From the sequence record NC_027399.1: a DNA stretch of 64,000 nucleotides. One strand, written 5' to 3'. Numbering within the stretch: the first letter of the stretch is position 1; each line of letters begins with the position of its first letter. A program made the position numbers and the translations under genes. Below the pieces are notes generated by a model. It saw only the letters and a program-made list of their open reading frames with translations. It was not told the DNA's origin and ran no database searches. Positions 4,983 to 25,889 of this stretch are shown here, piece by piece.

Positions 4983-4992
4983 AAATAGACCC

Positions 4993-4998
4993 TAAATA
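4993..4998 (+). promoter_or_regulatory. T4-like late promoter TAAATA (spanin operon)
   Basis: CCTAAATA 23 nt upstream of i-spanin; same motif precedes most structural genes. Confidence 0.55.
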
Positions 4999-5020
4999 TT
5001 CATATATCTTTGAAGGAGAT

Positions 5021-5395
5021 GTGAATATGTTAGAGTTTATAATCAAGGTTGTATCCGACAATTATAAACCCATCCTGATTGTATTGGCGATGGGTTTTTG
5101 TGTTTTCGGAGGATGGAAAGCAAATACTTATTACACCGGTTATCAATTAAGTATTTCCCAAAAAATTGAGAAAAAAGTAGATGATGCTATTGATAAGCTA
5201 CAACAAGAAAGTGCAAAAAATTTAGTTGAAACACAAAAGACAATTAAAGAGAATGCAACTAAAATTGTGGAAACCAAAGTACCAGTTATTATAGAGAAAA
5301 AAGTATACCAAAATGTCTGTTTAGATGAAGATGGTCTTCAGGTACTAAAAGAATTAAAACTTAATTCAACTGAAGGAAGGAGAAAACTACAATGA
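5021..5395 (+). CDS. i-spanin (Rz-like)
   Basis: N-terminal TM helix, coiled coil, C-terminal IIEKKVYQNVCLDEDG typical of Rz; precedes a lipoprotein. Confidence 0.8.
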   Translation: MNMLEFIIKVVSDNYKPILIVLAMGFCVFGGWKANTYYTGYQLSISQKIEKKVDDAIDKLQQESAKNLVETQKTIKENATKIVETKVPVIIEKKVYQNVCLDEDGLQVLKELKLNSTEGRRKLQ

Positions 5396-6807: not shown

Positions 6808-7295
6808 ATATCAATTCGAGGACTGAATTCTGCTGAATATCTATATGTATATGGATATACAAATAAACTTGAACCTATCGAAAACGTAGAGAGGCATTTG
6901 AGTGGTTCAGCNNNATAAAATCCTAAGTGTGAGCTTACAAAGCACAGCCATAATTCCAAAGAGTGCACAGGAGTCATCGCAACACGGCAAGTAAAAGAGA
7001 GCTATAGACATATGCTTTCCATCACTATAATCCTCTGGTGATGATAGATTGAACCTACGGAAAGTATTTTTCATAATTGTTAAGGGAGAATACACCAAAA
7101 TTTTTACAGGAGAGTTGCGTCTAAATTTTGTTGTATTCAAGTACTGAGATTGGTCAAATAGTCTCAGTATTAAGTGTGTGGTATGATACCTACTAAACCA
7201 CATGACCTCTGCATAAGACTGAGATAGGGAGAAACCGGGCAGACCGCTTCCGTTCTTTATAAAAAAAGAAATTCTCAATTTGACAGTTTCGAAGA
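6807..7295 (+). ncRNA. candidate large structured non-coding RNA (~480 nt)
   Basis: No credible CDS, raised GC, many nested stems with G-U pairs, and a long-range closing helix 6815-6829 with 7277-7293. Confidence 0.55.
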
Positions 7296-13145: not shown

Positions 13146-13553
13146 GTGATTTCATTGGAAGGTACATTGCAATATGATCCGCCAAGGACTATTAAAATCA
13201 ATGAACCTTATTGGTTAGTACTAAACCTACCAGATGAAATTATTAAGTACTACCAATGGTTTGTTCGTAAAGAATTATTCATTGATATTAAAGATCCTCC
13301 ACACAGTGCTCATGTGAGCATAGTTCGTGGTGAAGTTCCTCCTAATATTGATATGTGGAAAAAATATGATGGGATGGAATTACATTTCGAATATTATCCA
13401 TATATTACAATTAAAAAGGATGAGAAAAATCCAGGAAATTTTTTCTTTATTAACTTTTATTCTGATGAAATATTGAGCATTAGGGAAGAACTGGGATTAT
13501 ATTCCAAATATTCCGAGTGGCATTTTACGATTGGTAGAACACACTACGACTAA
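13146..13553 (+). CDS. 2H phosphoesterase-superfamily protein
   Basis: Two Hx(S/T) motifs, AHVSIV and WHFTIG, about 75 aa apart; GAGG RBS, GTG start. Confidence 0.7.
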   Translation: MISLEGTLQYDPPRTIKINEPYWLVLNLPDEIIKYYQWFVRKELFIDIKDPPHSAHVSIVRGEVPPNIDMWKKYDGMELHFEYYPYITIKKDEKNPGNFFFINFYSDEILSIREELGLYSKYSEWHFTIGRTHYD

Positions 13554-13652
13554 ATATAATTTGACATTAAATGAAATCAGTATTAAAATACTGAGATTGT
13601 TAAGTCCATAGTGGCTTGATGCGGAAAAGCCACTTTCTGTATCAAGCCTTTT
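13551..13652 (+). promoter_or_regulatory. endolysin promoter(s) and structured leader
   Basis: TAAATA 13551-13556; TTGACA-N17-TAAAAT 13561-13589; palindrome 13577-13594; 15-bp hairpin 13613-13648 + TTTT. Confidence 0.65.
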
Positions 13653-13680
13653 ATTAAACAAAAAAGGAGAAATACAGAAC

Positions 13681-14583
13681 ATGGCGAAACATAACAGAAA
13701 AACCATCAAAAAGCTTATTCTTTTAAGTGGTTTAACTGTTCTTGCTGCCGCTACATTTGAATTTAACGCTTTTTCTAATAACGATCACTTATCATCGCAA
13801 AAGGTAAGTATACAGGAACCGCATATTCAGCAAATTCAAAAGCAAGTACTTAACATTACAGTACTTAACAGCGAGAATGAAAAATACACGGTACAGGCTG
13901 GTGATACATATAAAAGTATTTCCGTTAAATATAAGCCAAAAAACGTGAAACTATCCGAGTATATCACATTAATAAAAAATATTAATTTGAATTCTCCTAT
14001 TAGAACTTCTCAAGTTATCCTCTTACCTAATAAAGAGGATTTGCAGAGCATTATGACTGATGAGGTTATAAAATTCGATTATACAAACCCAAATTTTATT
14101 TCTCACTTAAAAGAACAAGAGGGATCAAAAAAATATCAAAGTACTACTAAACGTAGATTGTTAAATGGTACTTATGGTTATTCTTACAAAAACTCTAAGT
14201 TCTATCCATACAGAGATAGCTATGGTAATTACACCATAGGCTTCGGTCATTATATTTCTCGTAATGAATCAGTTGCAATGAAGTACAAAAATGGCATCAG
14301 TACTAAGGAAGCACATGATTTATTACTTGAAGATCTTAAAGTTACTGATTTACAATTAACCAAATTATTACAAGAAAAGAATGTTAAAAATTTGAGTCCA
14401 TACCAAGAGAGGGTATTATTTGAAATGACATTTATGTTAGGTTCAGATAAATTGTCAAAATTCCATACAATGTGGAGTGGTATTAAAACTGGAAATCATA
14501 AAAAGGTTAAACAGGCGATTGTCAATTCATTGTGGTATCGTCAGGTACCAAATCGTGCTGAATTGCTCGTAAACAATCTTTAA
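13681..14583 (+). CDS. endolysin: N-terminal signal/SAR-like helix, LysM domain, T4-lysozyme-like (GH24) domain
   Basis: YTVQAGDTYKSI LysM; EQEG...YRDSYGNYTIGFGH; SLWYRQVPNRA. Confidence 0.85.
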   Translation: MAKHNRKTIKKLILLSGLTVLAAATFEFNAFSNNDHLSSQKVSIQEPHIQQIQKQVLNITVLNSENEKYTVQAGDTYKSISVKYKPKNVKLSEYITLIKNINLNSPIRTSQVILLPNKEDLQSIMTDEVIKFDYTNPNFISHLKEQEGSKKYQSTTKRRLLNGTYGYSYKNSKFYPYRDSYGNYTIGFGHYISRNESVAMKYKNGISTKEAHDLLLEDLKVTDLQLTKLLQEKNVKNLSPYQERVLFEMTFMLGSDKLSKFHTMWSGIKTGNHKKVKQAIVNSLWYRQVPNRAELLVNNL

Positions 14584-14598
14584 AACATTTTTTTGGCA

Positions 14599-14628
14599 TT
14601 GACAACATTACAGATTGTGTGTTATAAT
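14599..14628 (+). promoter_or_regulatory. sigma70 early promoter
   Basis: TTGACA-N18-TATAAT with extended TG. Confidence 0.75.
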
Positions 14629-14655
14629 AAAGGGACTTTAAGAGTCCCTTTTTCT
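14629..14655 (+). terminator. intrinsic terminator for endolysin
   Basis: AAAGGGACT...AGTCCCTTTTT. Confidence 0.7.
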
Positions 14656-18757: not shown

Positions 18758-18802
18758 TACAATTATAATATAGCACCTCTAAATAATGTATATAACATTA
18801 AA

Positions 18803-19603
18803 ATGAGGTGCTATATGTACGATTATATGGCTGGCAATCCAGATGCTCCAAATTTTGATCACAGAGAGAAAATTAAAGATACTATTACACAAATGCTTGG
18901 TGCAGGTGCTGTAAATGTAGAACTCACTGATGGTCAACTTGAAATTGCAATAGATAATGCAGTGAGTAATTACAGAGCATGGAGTTCTGCATCAAAAGAA
19001 GAAGCATTTTTACATTTAAAAATGTTCGATTCACAGAGTGTTTATGTACTTCCTACTGAAGTTGAAATAGTACATAAAATTTATCGCTACGGAAATGGAT
19101 ATTTAAGTTCTGGACAAGGTTCAGCAACTGACCCTTTTAGTTTAGCATTCACCAATAGTTATGTCCTCCAATCTGCACGAAATGCAGGTGGTTATGATTT
19201 AGCTACTTATGATTTTTCATTCCAATATCAAGAACTTGTCGCCAGAATGTTTGGAAGAGATATTATTTTTCAATTCAATCCAGTAACAAAGAAATTAGTA
19301 CTTGATCGTGATATTCGAGGAAATGAAGAAGTATTAATTCATGTTTTTCAAAACTTACCAGAACCGATGTTATTCCAGAAACAACAATCGTATCCATGGT
19401 TGCGTGATTGGGCTTTATCAGAAGCCATGATCATGTTAGGTAGAAACCGTAATAAATTTGCCACTCTACCCGGTCCACAAGGTACATTTTCAATGGATGG
19501 ACAACAGATGCTCGCAGATGGTCAACAATTGCAACAAGAATTAAAAGAACGATTAAGAAAATACGAAGATGGTTCTCAACCACTTGGTATGATTATTGGA
19601 TAA
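18803..19603 (+). CDS. neck protein (T4 gp13-like)
   Basis: VELTDGQLEIAID; WLRDWAL..LGRNRNKFATLPGPQG; TAAATA at 18780; start may be ATG 18815. Confidence 0.85.
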   Translation: MRCYMYDYMAGNPDAPNFDHREKIKDTITQMLGAGAVNVELTDGQLEIAIDNAVSNYRAWSSASKEEAFLHLKMFDSQSVYVLPTEVEIVHKIYRYGNGYLSSGQGSATDPFSLAFTNSYVLQSARNAGGYDLATYDFSFQYQELVARMFGRDIIFQFNPVTKKLVLDRDIRGNEEVLIHVFQNLPEPMLFQKQQSYPWLRDWALSEAMIMLGRNRNKFATLPGPQGTFSMDGQQMLADGQQLQQELKERLRKYEDGSQPLGMIIG

Positions 19604-22324: not shown

Positions 22325-22360
22325 TTTTCTCATTTCTAACATCCCTCATTAATCCTCCAA

Positions 22361-22366
22361 TAAATA
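22361..22366 (+). promoter_or_regulatory. late promoter TAAATA (sheath)
   Basis: CTCCAATAAATA, identical 12-mer also upstream of the tube gene (25151-25162). Confidence 0.65.
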
Positions 22367-22419
22367 ATACTATACGAGAATAATCGAATAGAACCAAATT
22401 ATTTTTGGAGGATTTTTTT

Positions 22420-25086
22420 ATGGCAGATTTAATCAGCCCAGGAGTTGACGTACAGATTACTGATGAAAGCATTAGTACTGCATCCACTCCAGGAACTGTA
22501 CCCCTATTTGTTTTAGCCACTGCTCAAGATAAATTAGTACCGGGATCAACTTCAATTGCATCCGCTACAACTCAAGCGAATGCTAATACACTACAACTAG
22601 TAACATCACAGAAAAATGTACTTGATCTGTTTGGTACTCCAGTTTTTCAGGTTGACAGCACCGGAAGCGTAGTTCAGGGTGATGAACTAAATGAATATGG
22701 TTTACATGCAGTATATTCCTATATGGGAATTTCTAACCGTGCATATGTTGTACGTGCAGATCTCGATCTAGCACAACTATCACCAAGATCAACTGCTCCA
22801 ACTGGCCCAGTTTCTAACGGTACCCTTTGGTTAGATATGACTTCTTCTCAAGTAGAAGCTTATATTGCTAAAGTGGAAAACCCATCAAGTTTCCATGACT
22901 GGGAATTAAAAACAGTACATATGGTAACTGCTGAGGATGTTGATGATGTTGATACTACAGAATATAATATTGACGATTTGGTATTGCGTTTTAAACCAAG
23001 TAATGGTCAATTTTTAATGTATAAACTGGAAGTACAAGGTCTGGTGCAACCAAACACCATTCTTTCACTAATCAATAAAGTACCTACTGGTGCAAATATT
23101 TCTGTTGGTGATGTGTGGATCCGTGATGGTTATACACAAAATGGTTCCAATTATTTTGGTACTCGTTTTGTAATTAAACGTTATATGTCACTTACTGGTG
23201 TATGGACTGTAGTACCAACTTATACAGGTAACAACTTCGCTGAAATCGAATCTAAGAGTGGTGTTTTCAATACAAGTTATATTGCATCTCGATTTGATTT
23301 AGATAGTAATAGTTTTTCTTTTTATCTACAGAGTGGAAAAACAGTATCACAAAATAGTCCTGCTGTTCCAGTCGGTGAACTAACTCCGACCACTGCTACT
23401 CAAATTTCATATTTAACTTTCTCTTATCTGGATAAAGTTACAAAACTTGTAGCAGTTAAACAAGGTGAAACAATTAATACCGCAACAATAATTAGTAATA
23501 TTTCTTCAAGTAAAGATATGGCTAATGCAGGTTTTAGTTTTGTCCGAGATTCAAATGGTGCTCTGGTTGTTAGCAACAAAAATGGCTATAGTTTCAAGAC
23601 TACTCAAACTGGTGATGTACTATTCAGTAATACTGAATTTGCTAAACTATCAGTTGTTGAAAGTTCAAACTATTCTATTCTGAATCCTAATAATTTCAAA
23701 GGCAACACTGATACCCCAACCAGTATTGCTAAAGATGGTACTTATTGGTATGATTTTTCCAATAGTGATAACTTGACTGTTACTATGTATACCGCTGATT
23801 ATGCAACTGATTCATGGAAACTTGTTGACAGTTCTAATCAATATGTACAAGTCGATGAACCCACTGCTGATCGTGAATTCTGGGTACTACCACTTTCACA
23901 AGGCGTTGATGGTTATGTTTTCTATCGTAACATCAACGGTTCATGGGTTAAACTTGATACTACGGATCAAAGTACCCTTAACGGCATGATTTTCGAAGAT
24001 TTTAACTTCCCTGATACTGTACCAGCACCAGAATTATATCAAAACTCTATGCTCGCTATCGACATGGGTAATACTGAAGGTGTTGTAAAGAAAATGGAAG
24101 ATGGCGAATGGCACGTAGTTAGTGGTACTAACCTAAGTGGTAGTGGTCTTTTCGGTCGTGCCGCACAACGTCAAATTGTTGTACAAGCACTTCAAGCAGT
24201 ACTGGTAGGTAATGAAGATATTCGTTCTGAATGGATTAGCTATAACCTAATCTGTGTTCCTGGATATGTTGAAACACTGGATGAATGCGTGACTCTTAAC
24301 GTAGATCGTAAAGAAACTGCGTTCATTATTACTGATGTTCCAGCACGATTAGATCCAACTGGTAATGGTAATGATGTACAAGCATGGGCCAGCAATGCAA
24401 ATAATGCGGCTAGTAATGGTGACGTTGGTCGTACAACCACTTATGACTATGCTGCTGAATACATGGGATGGTGCCTGAGTACTAACGTTGACGGTACTGA
24501 AATTGCAGTTCCTGGTAGTACAATAGCAATGCGTACTATTGCTTATAGTGATAGCATCAGTCATGTTTGGAACCCACCTGCGGGTACTTCAAACGGGGTT
24601 GTTACCAATGCAAGTTCTGTTGGTTTTATTAACTCAGAAGGTGAATATCAATCCGTTCAGTACTCTGAAGGACAACGTGATGTGATGTACTCAAACAATA
24701 TTAACCCTATTGCTATGCGTCCAACTCGCGGTCTTCTAATTTGGGGTCAAAAAACACTAAGTGCTGACAGTACTTCTGCACTAAGTCGTGTTAATGTCGC
24801 TCGTCTGATGTGTTATATTCGCAAACAAGTTGCTATCATTGCTGAACCATTCCTATTCCGACTGAATACACCAAGTACTCGTCAGGAATTCACTGGTGTG
24901 ATGAATGCATTCTTCAGTGAATTAGTGCAAAATAATGCACTATATGATTTTACTGTAGTGTGTGATGAGAGTAATAACACCTCCGCCCGTATCGACCGTA
25001 ACGAACTGTGGTGTGATATTGCAGTACAACCAGTGCGAGCAATTGAATTCATCTATATTCCAATTCGTATTGAAAACACTCAATAA
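22420..25086 (+). CDS. tail sheath protein (gp18-like) with large insertion
   Basis: LISPGVDVQITDES; NELNEYGLHA-like motif; C-terminal RVNVARL, VVCDESNNT..IDRNELWCDIAVQP. Confidence 0.92.
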   Translation: MADLISPGVDVQITDESISTASTPGTVPLFVLATAQDKLVPGSTSIASATTQANANTLQLVTSQKNVLDLFGTPVFQVDSTGSVVQGDELNEYGLHAVYSYMGISNRAYVVRADLDLAQLSPRSTAPTGPVSNGTLWLDMTSSQVEAYIAKVENPSSFHDWELKTVHMVTAEDVDDVDTTEYNIDDLVLRFKPSNGQFLMYKLEVQGLVQPNTILSLINKVPTGANISVGDVWIRDGYTQNGSNYFGTRFVIKRYMSLTGVWTVVPTYTGNNFAEIESKSGVFNTSYIASRFDLDSNSFSFYLQSGKTVSQNSPAVPVGELTPTTATQISYLTFSYLDKVTKLVAVKQGETINTATIISNISSSKDMANAGFSFVRDSNGALVVSNKNGYSFKTTQTGDVLFSNTEFAKLSVVESSNYSILNPNNFKGNTDTPTSIAKDGTYWYDFSNSDNLTVTMYTADYATDSWKLVDSSNQYVQVDEPTADREFWVLPLSQGVDGYVFYRNINGSWVKLDTTDQSTLNGMIFEDFNFPDTVPAPELYQNSMLAIDMGNTEGVVKKMEDGEWHVVSGTNLSGSGLFGRAAQRQIVVQALQAVLVGNEDIRSEWISYNLICVPGYVETLDECVTLNVDRKETAFIITDVPARLDPTGNGNDVQAWASNANNAASNGDVGRTTTYDYAAEYMGWCLSTNVDGTEIAVPGSTIAMRTIAYSDSISHVWNPPAGTSNGVVTNASSVGFINSEGEYQSVQYSEGQRDVMYSNNINPIAMRPTRGLLIWGQKTLSADSTSALSRVNVARLMCYIRKQVAIIAEPFLFRLNTPSTRQEFTGVMNAFFSELVQNNALYDFTVVCDESNNTSARIDRNELWCDIAVQPVRAIEFIYIPIRIENTQ

Positions 25087-25123: not shown

Positions 25124-25205
25124 ATAAGTTAGTACAGGTTGTGGTTATTTCTCCAATAAATAAATATAAAGAGAATTATATATTCCTTAGTGGAGAAATT
25201 ATAAT

Positions 25206-25889
25206 ATGGCGACAATGCTTGATAAGTATGGCGTACCCATTAGTGGTGGCGGCAATATGATGAAAAGCCCTAAACCAAAATATCGATACAGAGTTATCTT
25301 TTTTGGTTTTGGTGCAAACGACGATGGTAACATGATTACCCTTGATACCAATACCGTCGGTGCAGTTAGTGTATCACATGAAAATGTAACTGTTCATAGT
25401 TATAACTCAAGTGCACATTACAAAGGGAAATATTCATGGAACACAATTGAAGTTGCATTTCGTGATTCTGTTGGTAATGACAGTGCTAAAGCAGTTTATA
25501 ACCAAATGCGTAAAGAGTTTAACTATTATACTCAGGAATCACGCACTTCTGATTCACAATTTAAATTCGAAATGTGGATTCAGGAACTGGATGGTAGTAA
25601 CTCATCTGAACGTACCAATTTATTTCAGGGTACTCTGAGTACTTGGGTTTGTCAGGGTTGTTTTATTACTGAAACCAACTTTGGTGAATGGGATTATTCC
25701 AGTTCTGATCCACAAGTTATTACCATGACAGTTCAACCAGATGGTTGTGCTAAACTTGGGCCTACTGGTCTTCCATTCGGTGATGAAGTTTCCGGTAATG
25801 GTACTCCAGAAGGTGCTTCTTCTATTAGTGGTGCACAAACAGTCATTAATGAAACATCTATAACTGATAGTAACTTCTATACTTCATAA
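25206..25889 (+). CDS. tail tube protein (gp19-like)
   Basis: Follows sheath; PKPKYRYRV, WNTIEVAFRD, QGCFITETNFGEWDYSSSD. Confidence 0.85.
   Translation: MATMLDKYGVPISGGGNMMKSPKPKYRYRVIFFGFGANDDGNMITLDTNTVGAVSVSHENVTVHSYNSSAHYKGKYSWNTIEVAFRDSVGNDSAKAVYNQMRKEFNYYTQESRTSDSQFKFEMWIQELDGSNSSERTNLFQGTLSTWVCQGCFITETNFGEWDYSSSDPQVITMTVQPDGCAKLGPTGLPFGDEVSGNGTPEGASSISGAQTVINETSITDSNFYTS

Follow-up and report, generated by a model that had tools for sequence, protein, structure and literature searches.

For endolysins with an N-terminal membrane anchor, lysis is possible without a classical holin gate; their dosage and timing therefore need tight control, and the lysozyme locus of the Klebsiella jumbo phage K64-1 (Alcyoneusvirus, RaK2-like) raises the question of where such control might lie. 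We examined bases 1-64000 of this genome (NC_027399.1; hereafter the window), in which a gap of 127 nucleotides (nt) at 13554-13680, the intergenic stretch between gp033 and gp034, is the 5' leader of gp034, the predicted gene for the endolysin, a membrane-anchored LysM/T4-type lysozyme. The window agrees with the K64-1 genome at 100% identity, coordinate for coordinate. From predicted folds and their conservation, we think it reasonably probable that the gap is a conserved bistable leader RNA that restricts endolysin translation, to which the K64-1 group would add attenuation. The conserved output is most likely translation initiation, that is, ribosome access to the endolysin start, and the leader probably restricts how much of the cell-lysing enzyme is made, or when. 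The elements concerned are as follows.

13577-13594, + strand: hp1, a palindrome read as an RNA hairpin (7 bp, 4-nt loop) that stops 3 nt short of the conserved motif
13597-13607, + strand: seg1, TTGTTAAGTCC, which is how the family motif GTAGAAAGTCC reads in K64-1; pairing with 13613-13620 can give the helix hpX
13611-13633, + strand: hp2, a small conserved hairpin (GTGGCTT/AAGCCAC) of -10.1 kcal/mol
13613-13655, + strand: hpL, a 15-bp long hairpin (13613-13627/13634-13648) with a U-tract (13649-13655); terminator-like, it sequesters the anti-Shine-Dalgarno (anti-SD) strand
13635-13685, + strand: hp3, a hairpin sequestering the SD and start codon (13635-13642/13672-13679 and 13647-13652/13662-13667)
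13681-14583, + strand: gp034, the lysozyme gene proposed to be regulated; its product combines a transmembrane segment at the N terminus with a LysM-like region and a T4-type domain

Competing predicted folds in the K64-1 leader

An earlier note on this DNA had described a terminator-like hairpin and an alternative pairing in this gap as a bistable leader. The hairpin has exactly two G-U pairs and the loop AGCCAC, with TTTTATT at 13649-13655, and the alternative, GTGGCTT at 13611-13617 with AAGCCAC at 13627-13633, is likewise present and is conserved and covarying in relatives. With a predicted energy of -22.8 kcal/mol, hpL is the sole fold of a nascent RNA ending at 13655. A third partner had been overlooked, namely the SD and pre-start region at 13662-13679, with which the 3' arm of hpL (13635-13652) is predicted to pair as well, so the arm is an anti-SD strand and the switch would have a translational output. 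Folding of 13596-13685 gives the hp3 structure with the start codon paired, not the terminator hairpin. Over 13596-13695 the best energies are -26.4 kcal/mol with hpL enforced and -27.8 kcal/mol for hp2 plus the SD-sequestering hairpin, a difference of 1.4 kcal/mol that corresponds to a predicted ensemble of about 31% hpL and about 60% sequestered. The start codon pairs with 13629-13632 or 13606-13609 according to the fold, hpX is present in the minimum free energy (MFE) fold, and the hp3 duplex gives p = 0.018 in a shuffle test. The 5' region of gp034 has the lowest MFE among 65 K64-1 genes, yet its SD-opening cost ranks only 24th, as would be expected if an alternative fold compensates. Bistability of the leader is thus supported by two exclusive and nearly iso-energetic predicted folds, with the amendment that the output is also translational.

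We suggest that the central strand at 13634-13652, which carries the anti-SD bases, chooses between two exclusive partners. Upstream pairing with 13613-13627 would form the long hairpin and leave the SD and AUG free; downstream pairing with 13662-13679 would bury the SD and pre-start region, with 13611-13633 closing as the small hairpin. During synthesis the long hairpin would form before the SD exists, and in the complete leader the sequestered fold would be more stable, so translation of a toxic lysis enzyme would be limited to a window after synthesis or to transcripts that a factor holds in the open fold. In the K64-1 group only, the long hairpin ends in GCC and is followed by UUUUAUU, which may stop part of the polymerases; such a stop would attenuate early sigma70 and read-through transcripts. 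From the sequence features, their conservation and covariation and the predicted energetics, we infer the formation of these folds in vivo, their effect on translation or termination and the nature of a trigger.

Conservation of the leader in RaK2-like phages

The comparison covered 22 orthologous loci, from Asteriusvirus 121Q, TH47, SP27, Turkey3 and a Salmonella phage, Yersinia fHe-Yen9-03 and Serratia BF (Eneladusvirus), Pectobacterium CBB (Mimasvirus), Erwinia Hallingskeid, Xanthomonas XaC1 and uncultured contigs. The orthologous gene follows a gap of 110-199 nt in each of the relatives fetched, and the elements recur in one order: hp1, the motif GTAGAAAGTCC, a small hairpin that mostly carries a GCAA loop, a strand complementary both to the small hairpin and to the SD, and a strong SD. 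They lie directly upstream of the transmembrane/LysM/lysozyme gene in a single copy per genome, and the leader stays with this gene while the gene upstream differs among clades. An ATG start occurs only in the K64-1 group, where the SD-to-start spacing is unusually long at 11 nt; the 20 orthologues sampled from outside that group all have UUG or GUG as their start codon, behind a strong SD. The annotated ATG of the XaC1 orthologue (at 907 of its locus, L006) is probably 54 nt too far downstream, and a GTG placed behind GGAGG at 853 agrees in its start context with two related contigs, L133 and L134.

A covariance model trained only on CBB-, Yersinia- and Erwinia-type leaders, with no K64-1-type sequence, found its best match in the 64-kb window at 13574-13680 (29.4 bits, E = 4e-4, aligned end to end). 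The model also recovers the Asteriusvirus and uncultured types and gives a single significant match per genome, in each case at the lysozyme locus; the Xanthomonas-type leaders (XaC1 and the two contigs named above) are too divergent for it, and by eye and folding they keep hp1, GUCCA and the long hairpin. An Rfam scan of the K64-1 region returned no family (preQ1-II at 18.5 bits against a gathering threshold of 47, IS605-orfB-II at 21 against 88), scans of seven relatives gave no matches, and a pattern scan of viral contigs retrieved only members known from the protein search and chance matches. Judged from these comparisons, the leader is a member of a previously undescribed structured leader family of RaK2-like jumbo phages. 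The motif GTAGAAAGTCC has one exact copy per genome, and its K64-1 form is not enriched in the window; we also considered GTAGAAAGTCC as a phage promoter and rejected it on this single exact copy and on one-mismatch counts equal to those of controls. Among seven Alcyoneusvirus genomes the gap is identical except for one extra A in a loop, and the leader is unchanged in an isolate that carries 16 changes in the preceding 157 nt. In relatives, where the earlier note had proposed a check, the structure of the leader is kept, and the U-tract is confined to the K64-1 group.

Individual helices were supported to different degrees. The sequestered state (hp1, the small hairpin and the SD hairpin), scored on the model-based alignment, is 87% paired, with compensatory changes in 24 of 35 pairs and a score that none of 500 shuffles reached. 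Compensatory pairs were seen in hp1, and in the SD hairpin they affect 17 of 19 pairs on the model-fitted alignment. The second pair of hp2 is C-G in 11 leaders, A-U in eight and U-A in one (K64-1), and the fourth is G-C in nine, A-U in six and G-U in two. The long hairpin, to which the alignment was not fitted, is 82% paired against 46-60% in slid controls. Without any alignment, long-range complementarity exceeds that of shuffles in 21 of 22 leaders, and cognate pairs exceed cross-clade pairs. The helix hpX, which would join the motif to the 5' arm of hp2, is 95% paired and almost invariant, and is compatible with the data but unproven.

The predicted order of folding is also shared. For 19 of 23 orthologues, the long hairpin is the predicted fold of a leader cut off just before the SD, and at full length the MFE fold has at most three long-range pairs in 21 of 23. 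The SD window is paired in the MFE fold of all 23 (8-17 of 17 bases), with a predicted barrier between folds of 9.5-26 kcal/mol. The cost of opening the SD exceeds the upstream-shuffled background (at most 5% of shuffles reach the observed value) in 11 of 23 orthologues, mainly in the CBB, Yersinia, Serratia and Erwinia group.

Several points weigh against a bistable leader that restricts translation. All leader folds are thermodynamic predictions, and the strongest covariation figures are inflated, since the alignment behind them was fitted to the sequestered structure. By the opening-cost test, shuffling the upstream sequence leaves SD occlusion at least as strong in K64-1, in the 121Q group and in the group of loci L013-L123. 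The invariant Alcyoneusvirus block reaches about 170 nt into the gene, so that it could reflect a recent recombination block rather than selection. Finally, the SD-free fold of K64-1 is the terminator-like fold, which leaves no clearly productive state without partial read-through; productive expression must thus rely on such read-through or on a further factor.

Promoters, termination and alternative readings

K64-1 has two promoter motifs at this locus, both as the earlier note had read them.

13550-13557, + strand: late-promoter-like motif CTAAATAT, with TAAATA at 13551-13556, overlapping the gp033 stop codon; predicted late start at about 13562-13564
13561-13589, + strand: sigma70-like promoter, TTGACA (13561-13566), a 17-nt spacer and TAAAAT (13584-13589); predicted start at about 13595-13597

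TAAATA occurs in K64-1 at 4.08 per kb of intergenic sequence and 0.32 per kb of coding sequence, a 13-fold intergenic enrichment, and the intergenic copies lie mostly 34-59 nt ahead of start codons; the identical 8-mer CTAAATAT also stands ahead of the i-spanin gene. This distribution fits ATAAATA, the late consensus reported for CBB and GAP32 (PMC5259590). The sigma70-like promoter matches the consensus at 11 of 12 positions, and sites of at least 11/12 number nine on the coding strand and two on the other, where 5.6 are expected on both strands together. Both kinds of motif are thus supported as credible in the K64-1 genome. The late motif lies 53 nt upstream of GUCC, ahead of the entire structure, and there is no further TAAATA between 13557 and 13680. 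Because there is also no promoter between 13655 and the gp034 start codon, every lysozyme transcript would cross the terminator-like hairpin.

Most relatives have sigma70-like promoters upstream of the leader; the one in K64-1 overlaps hp1, and comparable promoters lie 27-90 nt further upstream in other genera. In the CBB/Yersinia/Serratia clade, TTGACA-N17-TAnnAT is embedded in the 3' end of the upstream open reading frame, about 73-78 nt upstream of the GUCC motif (loci L004, L005, L011, L024, L030-L034, L126 and L127). The Leu and Thr codons that hold TTGACA are fixed at synonymous sites while neighbouring third codon positions vary, and the -10 element stays TAnnAT although the encoded residue changes, which points to a promoter feeding the leader in this clade. 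A late-promoter motif was not found near the leader there.

With a 15-bp stem, six G-C pairs, a 6-nt loop and six U in the next eight nt, hpL has the build of an intrinsic terminator, and among the 12 terminator-like sites found between 8 and 20 kb (3.4 expected) it ranks first. In K64-1 it has the look of a textbook terminator set within the 5' untranslated region, and it may attenuate transcription as well. The U-rich tail is found only in the K64-1 group (six of eight U, vs 0-3 of eight elsewhere), where four of its U double as anti-SD bases. Since other genera keep the long hairpin without a U-tract, termination cannot be the conserved role. Of the terminator/anti-terminator switch that the earlier note had proposed to time lysis, the exclusive folds and the hairpin crossed by every lysozyme transcript stand, and termination as the conserved mechanism does not. 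A leader-peptide attenuator was considered and rejected: the only frame in K64-1 is GTG-GCT-TGA, which has no SD; those short frames that occur in 121Q, CBB and Hallingskeid lack conservation, and at this place the Yersinia phage has no start codon.

The plainest alternative is an ordinary intergenic region, with hpL as the intrinsic terminator of a gp027-gp033 unit and the promoters and SD pairing either incidental or a constant damping that involves no switching. Similar long AT-rich hairpins with T-runs follow other K64-1 genes (8223, 11011, 14629 and 19616), and the K64-1 result in the opening-cost test suits this explanation. However, with both promoter motifs upstream of it and the SD region only 25 nt further on, the hairpin is in the path of every lysozyme transcript, and it is conserved in genera that lack the U-tract; the leader accompanies the lysozyme gene through changes of the upstream gene, and the covarying small hairpin and conserved motif would go unexplained, so we regard this account as unlikely, if worth keeping in mind. 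The same hairpin might instead end a small RNA (sRNA) of about 55-60 nt, from 13596 to about 13655, that acts in trans through the conserved single-stranded motif, close to the ~55-nt sRNA suggested in the earlier note. An 11/12 promoter, a 17-nt single-stranded 5' segment with the family-conserved GUCCA and a stable hairpin with a U-tail would suit such an RNA, but the other genera have no terminator after the hairpin and have their promoters 27-90 nt further upstream, so that a discrete sRNA is not conserved outside Alcyoneusvirus and could apply to the K64-1 group only. No complementary target stands out (motif-complement counts equal control counts) and Rfam gives no match, which leaves the sRNA with a slim chance. 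A literature search found no transcriptome of a RaK2-like phage, and the contigs of sequencing runs (metagenomes and isolates) revealed no transcript ends; a single chimeric 151-nt RNA contig among them touches 13556-13594 and is uninformative.

Two further readings concern what the conserved 5' elements recognise. The leader could be a sensor whose single-stranded motif and small hairpin with its GCAA-type loop bind a small molecule, an RNA or a late phage protein, and this partner would select the fold and so set lysis time. GTAGAAAGTCC and its partner are nearly invariant across genera with lysozymes only 37-50% identical, which exceeds the need of base pairing, and in the CBB/Yersinia/Serratia clade the lack of a late motif near the leader, together with a sigma70-type promoter fixed inside the upstream gene, implies that timing there would be post-transcriptional. 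Known aptamers in Rfam do not match, however, no candidate factor was identified, and the invariance of the motif is also explicable by its several alternative pairing partners; we consider a sensor distinctly improbable. In a broader form, a new class of factor- or ligand-responsive switch, in which mRNA made from a host-type promoter long before lysis stays silent in the sequestered fold until a late phage product or metabolic signal releases it at the invariant GUAGAAAGUCC/GCAA-loop module, the idea is speculative and rather doubtful. The palindrome had been read in the earlier note as operator-like, and as a DNA operator it would let a dimeric repressor shut the overlapping sigma70 promoter. 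The inverted repeat TCAGTATT-aa-AATACTGA is indeed at 13577-13594 and, as a perfect 8-bp repeat, spans the -10 hexamer. As RNA it folds at -6.1 kcal/mol (shuffle p = 0.003), but the window holds 48 perfect 8-bp palindromes where about 16 are expected by chance, so a single one is unremarkable alone and its weight comes from positional conservation in relatives. There 0-3 nt separate the end of the hairpin from the motif, and the stem takes at least eight different, unrelated sequences, one of them GC-rich, mostly without an overlapping promoter, which is the signature of an RNA hairpin and not of an operator. We therefore reject the operator, to which we attach almost no probability. Just 5' of hp1, TTTCGAA(G) is conserved in several clades (L013, L014, L016, L123, L125 and CBB-type), whether the sequence is coding or non-coding, and in L125 it comes after a late-promoter-like run, ATAAATAAATA.

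Comparison with known systems and the surrounding locus

One of the closest known parallels is the leader of T4 gene e, in which early transcripts have an occluded ribosome-binding site (McPheeters et al. 1986; review, PMC3014915). As there, the message for a lysis enzyme of a T4-superfamily phage has its SD and start codon in a helix with a strand further upstream, so little translation should come from transcripts that enter from upstream. In T4, however, the late promoter lies in the 5' arm and late transcripts lack the inhibitory strand, whereas the late motif of K64-1 at 13550-13557 is upstream of the whole leader. The K64-1 inhibitory strand also differs in having a second conserved partner, in the long hairpin, and in being accompanied by hp1 and the GUCC motif. 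The analogy drawn in the earlier note thus does not hold for promoter position at gp034, and it fits other K64-1 late genes instead. Buried SDs were found in four of these, the i-spanin gene gp010, the connector gene gp044, the tail sheath gene gp047 and the tail tube gene gp048, in the following hairpins, with opening costs of 12-21 kcal/mol that are the highest of 65 genes.

4990-5040: late-gene SD hairpin
18765-18830: late-gene SD hairpin
22350-22425: late-gene SD hairpin
25145-25210: late-gene SD hairpin

TAAATA lies inside or at the 5' arm of each hairpin (gp010, gp044, gp047 and gp048), which is the T4 gene e arrangement; the device is apparently widely used in K64-1.

Metastable folds that depend on the order of synthesis are known from the maturation-gene leader of MS2 and from hok mRNA, in which a free SD comes first and a stabler fold hides it later, so that young transcripts are expressed. 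A transient SD-free fold followed by refolding is likewise predicted for the RaK2-like leader family, though these leaders are unrelated in sequence and differ in architecture. The trp and pyrBI attenuators and riboswitches offer a third likeness, in that the K64-1 15-bp stem with UUUUAUU competes with the small hairpin for the same 5' strand. The K64-1 leader, however, has no conserved leader peptide or known aptamer, the U-tract is absent in all other genera, and the fold that avoids termination hides the SD.

If the proposal is true, this leader would be the control on endolysin dosage and timing across jumbo phages of Klebsiella, E. coli, Salmonella, Yersinia, Erwinia and Pectobacterium that are therapeutic candidates, and the T4 gene e paradigm would extend to a design independent of promoter position. 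The leader is also a compact, testable RNA for studies of co-transcriptional folding. CBB_187, the gp034 orthologue of CBB, has been described as a likely endolysin with a signal-arrest-release-like anchor, and was toxic when cloned (PMC5259590); a bistable leader, if true, would account for this orthologue being hard to clone. The prediction of a lysozyme for gp034 itself draws on a match to Pfam PF00959 (3e-8), a weak LysM match, assignment to PHROG 15410 and catalytic-type E, D and T columns (glutamate, aspartate and threonine) that are invariant among the orthologues.

Upstream of the gap, gp033 encodes a small protein with a weak 2H-phosphoesterase match, and the spanin genes lie 8 kb upstream of the gp034 locus. 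Short N runs in the window (6912-6914, 48064 and 55110) are irrelevant to the leader. Beyond gp034, at 14599-14651, we observed a 12/12 sigma70-like promoter (TTGACA, 18 nt, TATAAT) followed directly by a 10-bp hairpin and a T-run. Its predicted start at about 14635 falls inside the 5' arm of the hairpin, so this hairpin would terminate lysozyme read-through while transcripts from its own promoter bypass it.

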